DNA of 55,726 nucleotides, counting the filler, from Bipalium vagum (Eukaryota): the NCBI GenBank assembly GCA_037834085.1. It is 3 parts of 3 records of this genome, joined end to end, with 100 filler letters (N's around TTAATTAATTAA, not from the genome) between each part and the next. Parts side by side here need not be neighbours in the genome. Positions count along the whole stretch, not along the records: positions 37,376 to 55,726 come from JBBMKC010031921.1; 2 more parts are not named here. One strand, written 5' to 3'. The stretch's first letter is position 1; every line of letters begins with the position of its first letter. The translations under genes were made by a program, and so were the position numbers. The notes beneath the pieces were generated by a model. It did not search any database. It was not told the origin of the DNA and saw only the letters and a program-made list of their open reading frames with translations. Shown piece after piece: positions 37,451 through 55,726 of this stretch.

Positions 37451-37977
37451 TACTTACTGTTTCACACAAAAAAGATCGATGTATTGAATATAGATTTGAA
37501 ATAGAAAGAAATCAAAATTTATTCTTCTATAGTTCGCAGACGCCTCATCGCAGCTAATCGTCACACTAAAAGACCTGTCAAAAACAACTTTCAACAAAAA
37601 CAATGAAATTTGGCAAAAAAATACAAGAATTGGACAATAAAACAATGTAGAAAAGTTCTTTTTAGTGATGGGAGCCATTTCTTGTACAAGGTCAGAGAAG
37701 TCAATATATTCGTCTGTCACCCGGAGAGAAGCTTCGCGATTGCCACATAGATCAGCCTGTCAAACATCGGTTAAAGAAGATGTTTTAGGGATTTTTCTTA
37801 TTATGGTATCTAAAACTTGCAACCGATCGAAGGAAAGATGTGTTCACAACAATATGTTGAAGTTCTCCAGAAAGCAGTTGTTATGTAAAATACACTATGT
37901 ACAATTTTAATTGAATAAAAAAATTCACTGTTATTATTTATTTTTATTTGTTGTTTCAATTAATTTTCACAAGGGTG
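37451..37977 (+). mobile_element. Deleted second copy of the 6369-7697 Tc1 family
   Basis: Colinear with ~6773-7235; same right TIR TTGTTTCAATTAATTTTCACAAG.GTG. Confidence 0.88.
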
Positions 37978-38137: not shown

Positions 38138-38760
38138 CAGGGTGGGCGCTGGAAGACAGAAGGACTTTAATCTAAAATAAATTTCAGTAAAACAAATTTA
38201 TTTTAAATCAAAATAGTTTATTTGAAAGATACAAGCTTAGAACTTAAGTTTTTCTAAATCCGGAAAATAATGTGTCTTTTAAATGACCACCATTTTCTTG
38301 CTCACAAAGAATTACACTTTTAGGACATTTTCCATTTCTGCATCCAATATTTCCGAGTCAAGAGACGTATTTTACCAACCTGAGCAGATCGTTGAAGTGT
38401 TGGAGTTATTGGATGTTCTTGAACGCTTCGCCGCACATATTCGACCATCAATTCAGTACGCACGGTTTTCCCTGGACCCTTCTTAGTAAGATCTGCAAAA
38501 GATCTAGTTTCTTCAAATCGTTTATTTAAATTTCTAATCATGTTGTCACTGGGAGCTTCTTTAACATGGAAGTGTCTTCGGTAGTTTCTCTGCGTTTGAA
38601 TGATTGACTTTCTATTTGAGCAGAAAAATCCAACAATTTTAGCCTCGTGAAACAATACCTTGAATGTGTACTGTGCTCAGTTAGAGAGAACTGAATATAA
38701 AATTGGTGAAATAGCCATTTGTGGCAAACAAAAACAAAGTTATTATTCATCAAATTAATC
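38138..38760 (-). mobile_element. Internally deleted DUF4817/DD41D-like Tc1-mariner element
   Basis: TA-CAGGGTGGGCGC TIR; ORF 38320-38655 SIIQTQRNYRRHF..APSDNMIRNLNKRFEETRSFAD..GKTVRT. Confidence 0.75.
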
Positions 38761-39562
38761 TACAGCAGCATAGCGCAAAGAAGACAGACCAAAAGACATT
38801 GGTTTTCTACAGTCCGGACATCAAAACTACTGTAAAAAGTCTGTAACGTACAATGCAAGGCTTCTCCATTTTCGTCTCTTATCAGACTATATATATCTTC
38901 CAATCTAAGAAATTTTTGATTCCAAGCCAGTAAGTCTTATAAAGATAGCATCATGAAATTGCTTTGTAAATGGAGTGACATGGTTGAACAGGTAAGTTTT
39001 AAACAGTGTTGCATTTTATAAATTTTTTTTGTAGAATCTATGGTAAAATGTTGTGGGAGTGAGCTTTCATTGACTAAATCAAATGAAAAGCTCTTAGTAA
39101 AAGTAATAACCCACCGAGAAATTATCAAAACAAAAATTGTAAATCTTTATTGATTCAAGTTTTTGAGTAGCGCAGTTTTCTTCATCCAAAAATGTCAATT
39201 AGCTGTTCACGAATAATGCTATCGTCTCCTTTCTCATCATAGACTTCGTCAACCCTTTCCTGTTCATCTTCAAAAAAGTTGATTGCTGTCTTCATGAATA
39301 GACCACTAATTGCGGAAACTGGAACGGTTCGGATCAATTCCCAAGCAAATATTTTGAGAATGAGTATACCATTATTTCTTGGTTTATGATGAATTACAAA
39401 TTCATTTCACTTTGGTAACACAATTCTTGTAGGAGATGGGCAACGAGTTAATTAACTTTAAAATTGACAAACGTTTTAAAAGTATTAAAATGTACTACTT
39501 ATAACAGTGAGTAGACAGGTTTGAATTTTGATATCTAAAGAGAGAATATGAAGAGCTCCTCA

Positions 39563-39660
39563 GGCAGGCATAGCTTGCTGGTTACTTCTGATTCCGAATG
39601 CTAATGAAAATTGACTTTCGATTTGCTTCTCTCTAACCGTAAGCGCAAACCTGTCTTTTT
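39563..39660 (+). ncRNA. Vault-RNA-like Pol III small RNA, copy 1 (93 nt + T5)
   Basis: 5' GGCAGG-CATA-GCTTGC-T-GGTTACTTC ... TAACC-GTAAGC-GCAAA-CCTGTC-TTTTT. Terminal panhandle, box-A-like TAGCTTGCTGG and oligo-T terminator. Confidence 0.75.
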
Positions 39661-40251
39661 ATTGAATATCAATCTGAAAATAATTATATTATAATTATTT
39701 TAATATAATAAATAATAAATAATAATATAATAAATAATAAATAATAATAATTAATATAATTTTTATCAATAAAATACCATCTGAAAAGGTAATTAAAAAT
39801 CTGTTCCTTTCCGAGAAGGACAACACTCAATGGCAAATTTACGGGAAGATTTCACGAAACCCGTAAATGATGCCTTACGCAGCCGTCGGTTCTGAAGCTG
39901 AGGAATGATTTTATTGGATATTAATAATTTTTAATATTTCTCAGTACATTTTTAAAAAATAATAATCAATCAAACAAAAAATAAAATGAAAAATTATTTA
40001 TATTTGGAATCAATCAGGGAGAGATATTTTCATTTCATAAATATAATTTATGTATAATAATAATATATAATAATCATAAAAATATTTTTTCAGAAAATTC
40101 GATAATAACTTTTTATAATGAAAATCCATATTTAACGGAAAAAAGTGGATCACGAAAAAGGTTGAAAGATCCACATTTGATCCCTGAATCAATTTTATTA
40201 AACGAATTTTAAAAAATTAAAAACTTACCGTATTCTTTTGCATAAATAAAC

Positions 40252-40315
40252 AAAAGCAGGATTGCGCCAGTGGTTAACGAATTTTAAAACTTAAAGTTTT
40301 TAAATTTGAAAGTTG

Positions 40316-40350
<35 letters not shown>

Positions 40351-40394
40351 ACTAGTAGTAGTAGTAGTAGACGTAACCAACAAGCTGTGCCTGC
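40252..40394 (-). ncRNA. Vault-RNA-like small RNA, copy 2 (139 nt + T4; microsatellite-expanded centre)
   Basis: 5' GCAGG-CACA-GCTTGT-T-GGTTACGTC ... TTCGT-TAACC-ACTGGC-GCAAT-CCTGC-TTTT. Confidence 0.65.
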
Positions 40395-40703
40395 ATTATA
40401 ATTAAAATTATTTTGTCATATAAGGTCATTTTAAATTTATGCTACTCAGTATTTGTAAGCAGTGTGTAAATATTAAAACATTAGTTAATTAAAACAATTG
40501 ACGTTACTGTTTCAAAACCAAAAAAGATTTATTTTTTAATTGATTAAATAAACTACAAAATCATATTTTATGAGAGGATTTTAGAAAGTGCCCAATAAGG
40601 AATGGGACAAACCTTTAATATCGATTAATAATCCATAAAATGATTCTGTCACATCTCCTTCAGTAATTATATAGAGAAACCTTAGGCTGAAAGTTCTAAT
40701 GGT

Positions 40704-40787
40704 AAAAGCAGGTCTGCGCCAGTGGTTATGAGGTTATTGATTTAACAAGCCAATTTGATACCGATGTAACCAACCAGCTGTGCCTGC
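40704..40787 (-). ncRNA. Vault-RNA-like small RNA, copy 3 (80 nt + T4)
   Basis: 5' GCAGG-CACA-GCTGGT-T-GGTTACATCG ... TAACC-ACTGGC-GCAGA-CCTGC-TTTT. Confidence 0.72.
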
Positions 40788-41279: not shown

Positions 41280-42292
41280 TGTTTTTATATGACTTTCCCC
41301 ATTTCAACGTCTTTCGAATACATCAATCACAAACTTTCGATTATAAATTTTTATTGATTTGTTATGTGGACGACAATTTATCTACTGTAACAATGCACGT
41401 TTTCTGTATATTAGAGCTGGGTATTTGGCCGCAAGGTTTTCATACATACCTTGAATCTGCTCAACATAAAACTGGACAGTTATTGTACGTCCATTTGGAA
41501 CCAACTCAAAGTGTATTTGGCCATCCTTATACCACCAAACGCACAATAAAACGTTGGGTTAAAATCGCTGGCGTTTGGAAATCGGGATAAGAGTCTGATT
41601 AGAGCTTAACCACTGATTTCTCAAGTATAGATTCCGGAAGTACACCCATTTCTCTAACAAGTAACGATGGTTGTTAGAAATCGTTCATTATTTAGATAGA
41701 GAAGGAGTTGTTCACACATTTGCAAACGTTTTTCCGCTTGTTTCCGTAATCAAATCATACGGTACAACTTTGCATCCACTATTTCTTCTGCCATGAGATA
41801 GGAGTTTGTGGTGTACTGAAGATTTCGGAATTTGAACTTCACCTGAAAGTCTTCTGATACTGGTACAAGGATTTTCATATAAAGAATGCATAATTTCTTG
41901 GGAATAAAATGTTGAGGGTCTTCCAGAACGTGACTCATCATTAAGATCCGCATTGCCCGAATTGAATCTTTTAAGCTATTTGTTAGCTTTTAGTGACGAA
42001 TTTGTCTTCTTCAAGTTCACATATTTCAACTGCAGCAGATTGAGCACTGAAATCTTTTTTCCAATGAGGAGTAAAATGATACGAACAGTATATTTCTTAC
42101 CAACTTCATTCATATTACTCTGTAATACTAAGAAAAAGTATTAGATCAATATATTTTATTTCTGGCACATCACTTGTTGTGTGTCTTTTCAAAATAGTTG
42201 TAAATAAGTTCAATTTATTGGGCTATTTAAATAATTTACCTTTAAATATTACGATTTCAAAAAGTGATCACGAACCTATAGAAAACTCTAAT
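41280..42292 (-). mobile_element. Decayed mariner element
   Basis: KRFNSGNADLNDESRSGRP; VVPYDL (WVPHEL-like); VLLCVWW..IHFELVPNGRTIT..LAAKYPALIYRKRALLQ; TIR-like TATTAGAGTTTTCTATAGG at ~42292. Confidence 0.8.
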
Positions 42293-55497: not shown

Positions 55498-55726
55498 TTA
55501 GGTGTACAAGTTGAAAATGACGTTTTTTAAGACTGTAAAAAAGTTTATTTTTTCATAGAATAAACAAAATTTTTTATACAAGATAATTTCCATCACAATC
55601 TACAACATTGGCCCATTTTTGTAGTAGTTGGTGAATACCATAAAAAAAATTTTCCTGTTTCAGAGCGATCCAGTCATGAAGCCATTTTTGGACATCCTCG
55701 AAGTTTTGGAACCGGTGTTCACAGAG
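55498..55726 (-). mobile_element. Mariner (mauritiana/Mos1-like) 3' end
   Basis: TA-TTAGGTGTACAAGTTG TIR; LCEHRFQNFEDVQKWLHDWIALKQENFFYGIHQLLQKWANVVDCDGNYLV*. Confidence 0.9.

Follow-up and report, generated by a model that had tools for sequence, protein, structure and literature searches.

We find in the window (the whole stretch of DNA analysed here, 55,726 nt) three small units that are, with a probability of roughly 0.8 in our judgement of their sequences, paralogous and diverged genes of the vault RNA (vtRNA) family. They are predicted genes of a family that is already known, and make up no new class. All three lie inside 1.2 kb of an 18-kb piece, which has a G+C content of about 27%, and are referred to below as copies A, B and C:

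39563..39660, + strand: copy A, predicted vault RNA gene and best preserved of the three; RNA at 39563-39655 (93 nt), then T5
40252..40394, - strand: copy B, vault-RNA-like gene; RNA at 40394-40256 (139 nt), then T4
40704..40787, - strand: copy C, predicted vault RNA gene; RNA at 40787-40708 (80 nt), then T4

The three copies are found where the original prediction had placed them, and the lengths of 93, 139 and 80 nt agree with it.

Arrangement and structure of the three copies

On the whole, the copies have about 26 nt in common at the 5' end and about 25 nt at the 3' end, plus an oligo-T tail, while their centres are unrelated and do not align. The 22-nt 5' motif GCAGGCAYAGCTKGYTGGTTAC is matched at 39564 (+), 40394 (-) and 40787 (-), that is, 3 times in the window against 0.00 expected from 100 dinucleotide shuffles. 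An independent repeat search also recovers the ends of B and C, with 28 nt at 89% and 25 nt at 92%. The pattern of shared ends with unrelated centres, on which the original prediction was built, is seen again by motif count, repeat search and alignment, and the oligo-T that it described after the 3' arm is present as T4-5 at the end of all three copies. The conserved part is the RNA body alone, from G(G)CAGG to the T4-5 run.

In all three copies, the 5' and 3' ends pair into the same 16-bp panhandle. It consists of P1 (5-6 bp, GCAGG/CCTGC) and of P2 and P3, which together have 11 bp with one bulged U, and an asymmetric internal loop, CAYA opposite GCRAW, lies between P1 and P2. The combination of paired ends, internal loop and variable centre, by which membership in the vault RNA family can be judged, is present. 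In the three-copy alignment 97.9% of the panhandle cells are paired, a share that falls to 23-46% once the 3' partners are shifted by 1-3 columns. All 16 pairs form in copy C, and copy B has one U.U mismatch, which is located in P2. The minimum-energy folds of A, B and C each contain the panhandle (z of -2.87, -1.94 and -2.0, respectively), and RNAalifold on four sequences returns the same 16 pairs. The compensatory changes claimed earlier for the helix are real, with two pairs changed on both sides (C-G to U-A, and U-A to G-U) and three changed on one side; however, they are few, and with three sequences the covariation is not significant alone, being reached by 117 of 500 shuffles.

The cluster is located among transposon relics, about 4.5 kb downstream of an AP180/PICALM-type gene. 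The features around it are the following:

53122-52799, - strand: C-terminal exon of the AP180/PICALM-type clathrin assembly gene
52751-52707, - strand: C-terminal exon of the same gene
50721-50548, - strand: C-terminal exon of the same gene
45345-45241, - strand: C-terminal exon of the same gene (introns of 2-5 kb)
37607-37747, + strand: degenerate transposon relic
38323-38676, - strand: degenerate transposon relic
41385-41975, - strand: degenerate transposon relic
55577-55726, - strand: degenerate transposon relic
39790-39900: short island of higher G+C between A and B; it matches no Rfam family, and coding similarity is not recognisable

The ANTH domain of the AP180/PICALM-type gene is beyond the end of the piece. 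Searched singly, its exons match P0003, a 650-aa ANTH-domain protein found by an exhaustive HMMER search with one exon, at 51-63% identity. Homologous-protein, protein-atlas and encoding-contig searches with single exons gave no match. The identity of P0003 to its orthologues from molluscs, an annelid, a hemichordate and insects is 38-60%, and it stands on a very long branch. The gene thus points to a fast-evolving metazoan other than an insect, and to nothing finer; the "flatworm-type animal" of the original prediction is not confirmed by it, and flatworm and hydrozoan are both guesses. The relics are Tc1-like, a DUF4817 helix-turn-helix (Pfam E 9e-09) and pieces of mariner-type transposase, recognised by eye except for DUF4817, whose open reading frame led to short contigs only. 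In addition, the AT-rich stretch at 40041-40097, between A and B, has a summed contig depth of about 1485 versus a baseline of 20, and is a highly repeated simple or low-complexity element.

Family assignment and an outside homologue

We scanned the 18-kb piece against 4227 Rfam families with E up to 10, and Vault (RF00006) is the only family among them that matches A and C. Copy A scores 30.3 bits against Vault, with E of 0.0037 over the 18-kb piece and 2.6e-05 locally, and copy C scores 21.2 bits, with E of 0.0088 locally, while copy B reaches only 13.8 bits. All three are under the Vault gathering score of 34 bits, and therefore they are probably unannotated. The alignments of A and C span the full Vault model (positions 1-99) and so take in the 3' arm with its GCGC motif. 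Aligned to the RF00006 consensus, copy A agrees with the likeness to human vtRNA1-1 described in the original prediction. Neither Y RNA nor sbRNA has an Rfam match at E up to 10, in the whole piece or in the local scans of A and C; apart from Vault, these local scans give nothing of note and no tRNA match, and no tRNA is detected by ARAGORN. When Vault is set against Y RNA and sbRNA with Infernal, as had been proposed, Vault alone matches, and a new TROVE-binding small-RNA family, the other possibility put forward at the time, is not needed.

A homologue from outside the window is found in another data set. Here we built a covariance model from copies A, B and C, as the original prediction had suggested, and call it R1. 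On the 18-kb piece R1 gives 85-102 bits to the window copies (86.1 for B), with 9.6 bits for the next best match, and it detects no further copies in the other 17 kb. A relaxed 5' pattern run over JGI metagenome contigs yields 29 loci, and one of these, L020, is found by R1. It is an AT-rich contig of 2655 nt with a full-length R1 match of 54.2 bits (E 1.5e-10), and its RNA scores 38.4 bits against Rfam Vault, over the cut-off of 34. Among the controls with the same 5' pattern, which comprise 28 metagenome and 25 bacterial-genome loci, none exceeds 18.9 bits with R1. The 25 bacterial-genome matches to the 5' pattern are set aside as chance, with no relative among them. When Rfam is applied at gathering scores to 20 of the metagenome loci (L003-L022), the Vault cut-off is reached by L020 alone.

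By blastn, L020 is similar to the 18-kb piece over the RNA only, and copy A is 72.6% identical to the L020 RNA over 106 nt, part of the centre included. As the similarity between L020 and the window is limited to the RNA, selection therefore acts on the RNA body. The contig starts and ends with the same 127 nt, an exact overlap, which fits an assembly path that closes on itself, either as a circle or as a tandem repeat, the unit being about 2.5 kb long. The L020 RNA adjoins a Tc1 relic. Across the junction of its ends, L020 holds a Tc1-type transposase relic that a small element interrupts; this element has inverted ends (CAGGGGTCAGGAACC...), is flanked by duplicated GGCTAGAC, and looks like a hAT-type MITE inserted into the transposase gene.

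Overall, the prediction of a vault-type Pol III gene cluster is borne out in part: Vault is the sole Rfam match to A and C, and L020 passes the Vault cut-off, but the window copies themselves stay below it.

Transcription signals, copy number and other explanations

A further feature of family members is an internal Pol III box A in the 5' arm, and this is found. It reads TAGCTTGCTGG in copy A and TAGCTTGTTGG in L020, in both cases with 7/9 specified positions of TRGCNNAGTGG, at RNA positions 9-19, and GGTTAC comes after box A in the 5' arm. Copy B has 6/9 at the homologous position, and for copy C the homologous site is not among the best two matches listed. For the canonical box B, GGTTCGANNCC, the best matches have 5-6/9, which is reached by 41-99% of shuffles and so is at chance level. 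Without a recognisable box B the case for vault RNAs is weaker but not lost, since the vtRNAs of Fasciola are likewise reported to conserve box B barely. Upstream of two of the copies there are TATA-like octamers:

39532..39539, + strand: TATA-like octamer TATCTAAA, from -31 to -24 relative to copy A; it may be a Pol III promoter element upstream of the gene
40416..40423, - strand: TATA-like octamer TTATATGA, from -29 to -22 relative to copy B

L020 also has one, TATAAATA, at -29 to -22. Such octamers carry little weight because the DNA is AT-rich; as candidates, the TATA-like boxes at about -30 and an ACTRCT element at -70 perform no better than shuffles, whether their position is constrained or free.

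At the other end, the T-run of A (T5), C (T4) and L020 (T4) is at the 3' end only, so that a terminal oligo-T without an internal one, as expected of a family member, is present in these three, with B excepted. The centre of copy B is filled with microsatellites, (TAC)6, (ATA)n and (CAA)3, and its RNA has an internal T4 at position 106, 35 nt upstream of the terminal T4. Provided that T4 suffices, as it must because B and C themselves end in T4, Pol III would terminate at this internal T4 and not reach the 3' arm; B is for this reason probably a decaying duplicate. With its 13.8 bits, its microsatellites and its internal T4, B looks degenerate, and for this copy the earlier view of three vault-type genes is overstated, while copies A and C look functional as far as their sequences tell. 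An exact 14-nt direct repeat, AACGAATTTTAAAA, occurs at 40276-40289, inside the centre of B beside the 3' arm, and at 40201-40214, about 40 nt past the terminator of B. In AT-rich DNA such a pair may arise by chance; alternatively, it may mark a patch duplication or conversion by which the 3' end of B was rebuilt.

If the copies are transcribed as vault RNA genes, Pol III would start at or beside the first G, guided by the internal box A, perhaps together with a TATA-like element near -30, the latter being invoked because a canonical box B is not recognisable. Transcription would then stop in the T run and leave a U-tail. The panhandle with its internal loop may serve as a platform for the vault protein TEP1 (TROVE domain), and the variable centre may give individual properties to each paralogue.

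The number of copies was estimated by depth, taken from one DNA-type run stored as contigs, in which the baseline k-mer depth is about 20. Copy A has a k-mer depth of 20.4, equal to that of its flanks, and both A and B are single-copy by depth. For copy C, a 76-nt unitig with 5 differences over 40704-40779, the body of the copy, has a depth of 138 vs about 20. At 40787, the 5' end of C, two contigs part from the copy and run on into the same alternative flank. C-like genes are present elsewhere in the genome at about 7 times the single-copy depth. Their one common flank suggests an array or a segmental duplication and not dispersed retroposition, and the multi-copy state fits a gene array but also a mild amplification of a repeat. 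Copies flanked by target-site duplications had been named beforehand as a sign against RNA genes; looked at for the three copies, no such duplications abut A, B or C (the longest words that the flanks share measure 5-8 nt and do not lie adjacent), and none of the copies has an A-rich or simple tail. Without target-site duplications, with unrelated bodies, and with 3 copies in 18 kb, the units lack the marks of a SINE or MITE.

These data bear directly on the idea that the units are a non-functional repeat, be it a SINE derived from vtRNA or tRNA, a MITE with terminal inverted repeats, or pseudogenes spread by a transposon. We regard this as improbable. Ends that are kept around unrelated centres are the opposite of what a SINE or MITE should display, and the asymmetric loop and one-ended T-run have the same orientation in all four sequences, L020 included. 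The surroundings do lend the idea some weight, with the cluster lying among Tc1, mariner and DUF4817 relics and L020 adjoining a Tc1 relic, and so do the degeneration of copy B and the multi-copy relatives of copy C. However, A and B are single-copy, the extra C-like contigs share one flank and not many, the next R1 score in the remaining 17 kb is only 9.6 bits, and neither target-site duplications nor an A-rich or simple tail accompany the copies. Mere chance similarity in AT-rich DNA has in its favour the low G+C of the region and nothing more. It is refuted by the motif, matched 3 times while 100 shuffles yield 0, by R1, which gives the copies 85-102 bits and the next best match 9.6, and by an independent homologue in another data set, and we leave it hardly any probability at all.

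The units might also belong to another panhandle Pol III RNA, similar to Y RNA or nematode sbRNA or of a new family, and be vault-like only through box A and the paired ends. The sub-cut-off Vault scores of the window copies and the lack of a recognisable box B, a usual feature of vtRNAs, are in line with this, but the alignment to Vault goes beyond box A and extends to the 3' arm and the GCGC motif of the internal loop, and L020 passes the Vault cut-off. Moreover, no Y RNA, sbRNA, tRNA or other family appears at E up to 10 in the local scans of A and C, ARAGORN reports no tRNA, and the layout agrees with that of the expressed vtRNAs of Fasciola. The odds for such an RNA are thus, in our opinion, quite poor. 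Within the preferred reading as diverged vault RNA genes, a more specific version can be drawn, to which we give a small chance as a whole: the copies would form a diverged vtRNA sub-family of a fast-evolving invertebrate lineage, which has lost box B, uses box A together with a TATA-type element, and is kept partly in tandem arrays, and this lineage would be one with no previously described vault RNA. The tandem arrays are proposed here because the 2.5-kb unit of L020 closes on itself and the C-like depth is 7-fold.

Comparison with known vault RNAs and related families

The statement in the original prediction that vault RNAs are characterised mainly in deuterostomes and trypanosomes is out of date. 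Vault RNAs are mentioned in two lophotrochozoan lineages in the part of PMC2770079 that cites Mosig et al. 2009, and the Rfam Vault listings include Lottia, Helobdella and Macrostomum (PMC8824774). In Fasciola hepatica there are five vtRNAs, which were found only by relaxed searches, and four of the five are clustered; they are expressed, enriched in vesicles and 107-112 nt long, with box B barely conserved (PMC8824774). In Hydractinia, 3-4 Vault genes are annotated with Rfam, and small RNA genes often form evenly spaced tandem arrays (PMC11067881). The major vault protein partner, MVP, is recorded in sponges, cnidarians, bivalves, annelids and echinoderms, and was not found in arthropods (PMC3762200); it is also recorded in the "nematodes" of PMC3762200, of which the named species are the flukes Clonorchis and Schistosoma.

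With vtRNAs already reported in molluscs, annelids, flatworms and a hydroid, our results leave the knowledge of the family unchanged. Vault RNAs evolve so fast that standard annotation misses those outside deuterostomes. If confirmed, the cluster and L020 would add sequences of protostome grade or early branching to a thin alignment, would allow better search models, and would help to tell the features that are kept (panhandle, loop, box A and GGTTAC) from those that are dispensable (box B and the centre). If the host lineage lacked MVP, there would be vault-type RNAs working without vaults.

Y RNA genes have upstream promoters and no internal box A. The Y RNAs and the nematode sbRNAs, which bind Ro60, resemble A-C as small Pol III RNAs with paired ends, a variable centre and a U-tail, and they are often clustered. 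They are different in that neither family gives an Rfam match here at E up to 10, and in that A-C have an internal box A.

The members of RF00006, which include human vtRNA1-1, 1-2, 1-3 and 2-1 and those of other deuterostomes, are close to A-C in many respects. They have a length of 80-140 nt, paired ends with an internal loop, box A followed by GGTTACTTC, GCGC in the 3' arm, an oligo-T terminator and a variable centre, and their paralogues are clustered within about a kilobase. Unlike them, A-C have scores below the cut-off, no recognisable box B and AT-rich centres, and the sequence of P1 (GCAGG/CCTGC) differs.

In the Fasciola vtRNAs the elements follow each other as in A-C: the terminal stem of 6 bp leads to an internal loop and then to a short second stem, and box A is followed by GGTTACTTC. 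They too are clustered, with a weak box B. Their 3' end, GGCAATCCCGATCATTT (GCAATCC..G.TCATTT), is similar to GTGCAATCCTGTCATTTT of L020, as judged by eye on short motifs (Table S9, PMC8824774). In contrast to the predicted genes of the window, they are G+C-richer and shown to be expressed. Compared by gene arrangement, the Vault genes of Hydractinia, outside Bilateria, are likewise present in few copies per genome, and the 127-nt end overlap of L020 and the multi-copy C-like genes fit the same pattern as the tandem arrays of that species.
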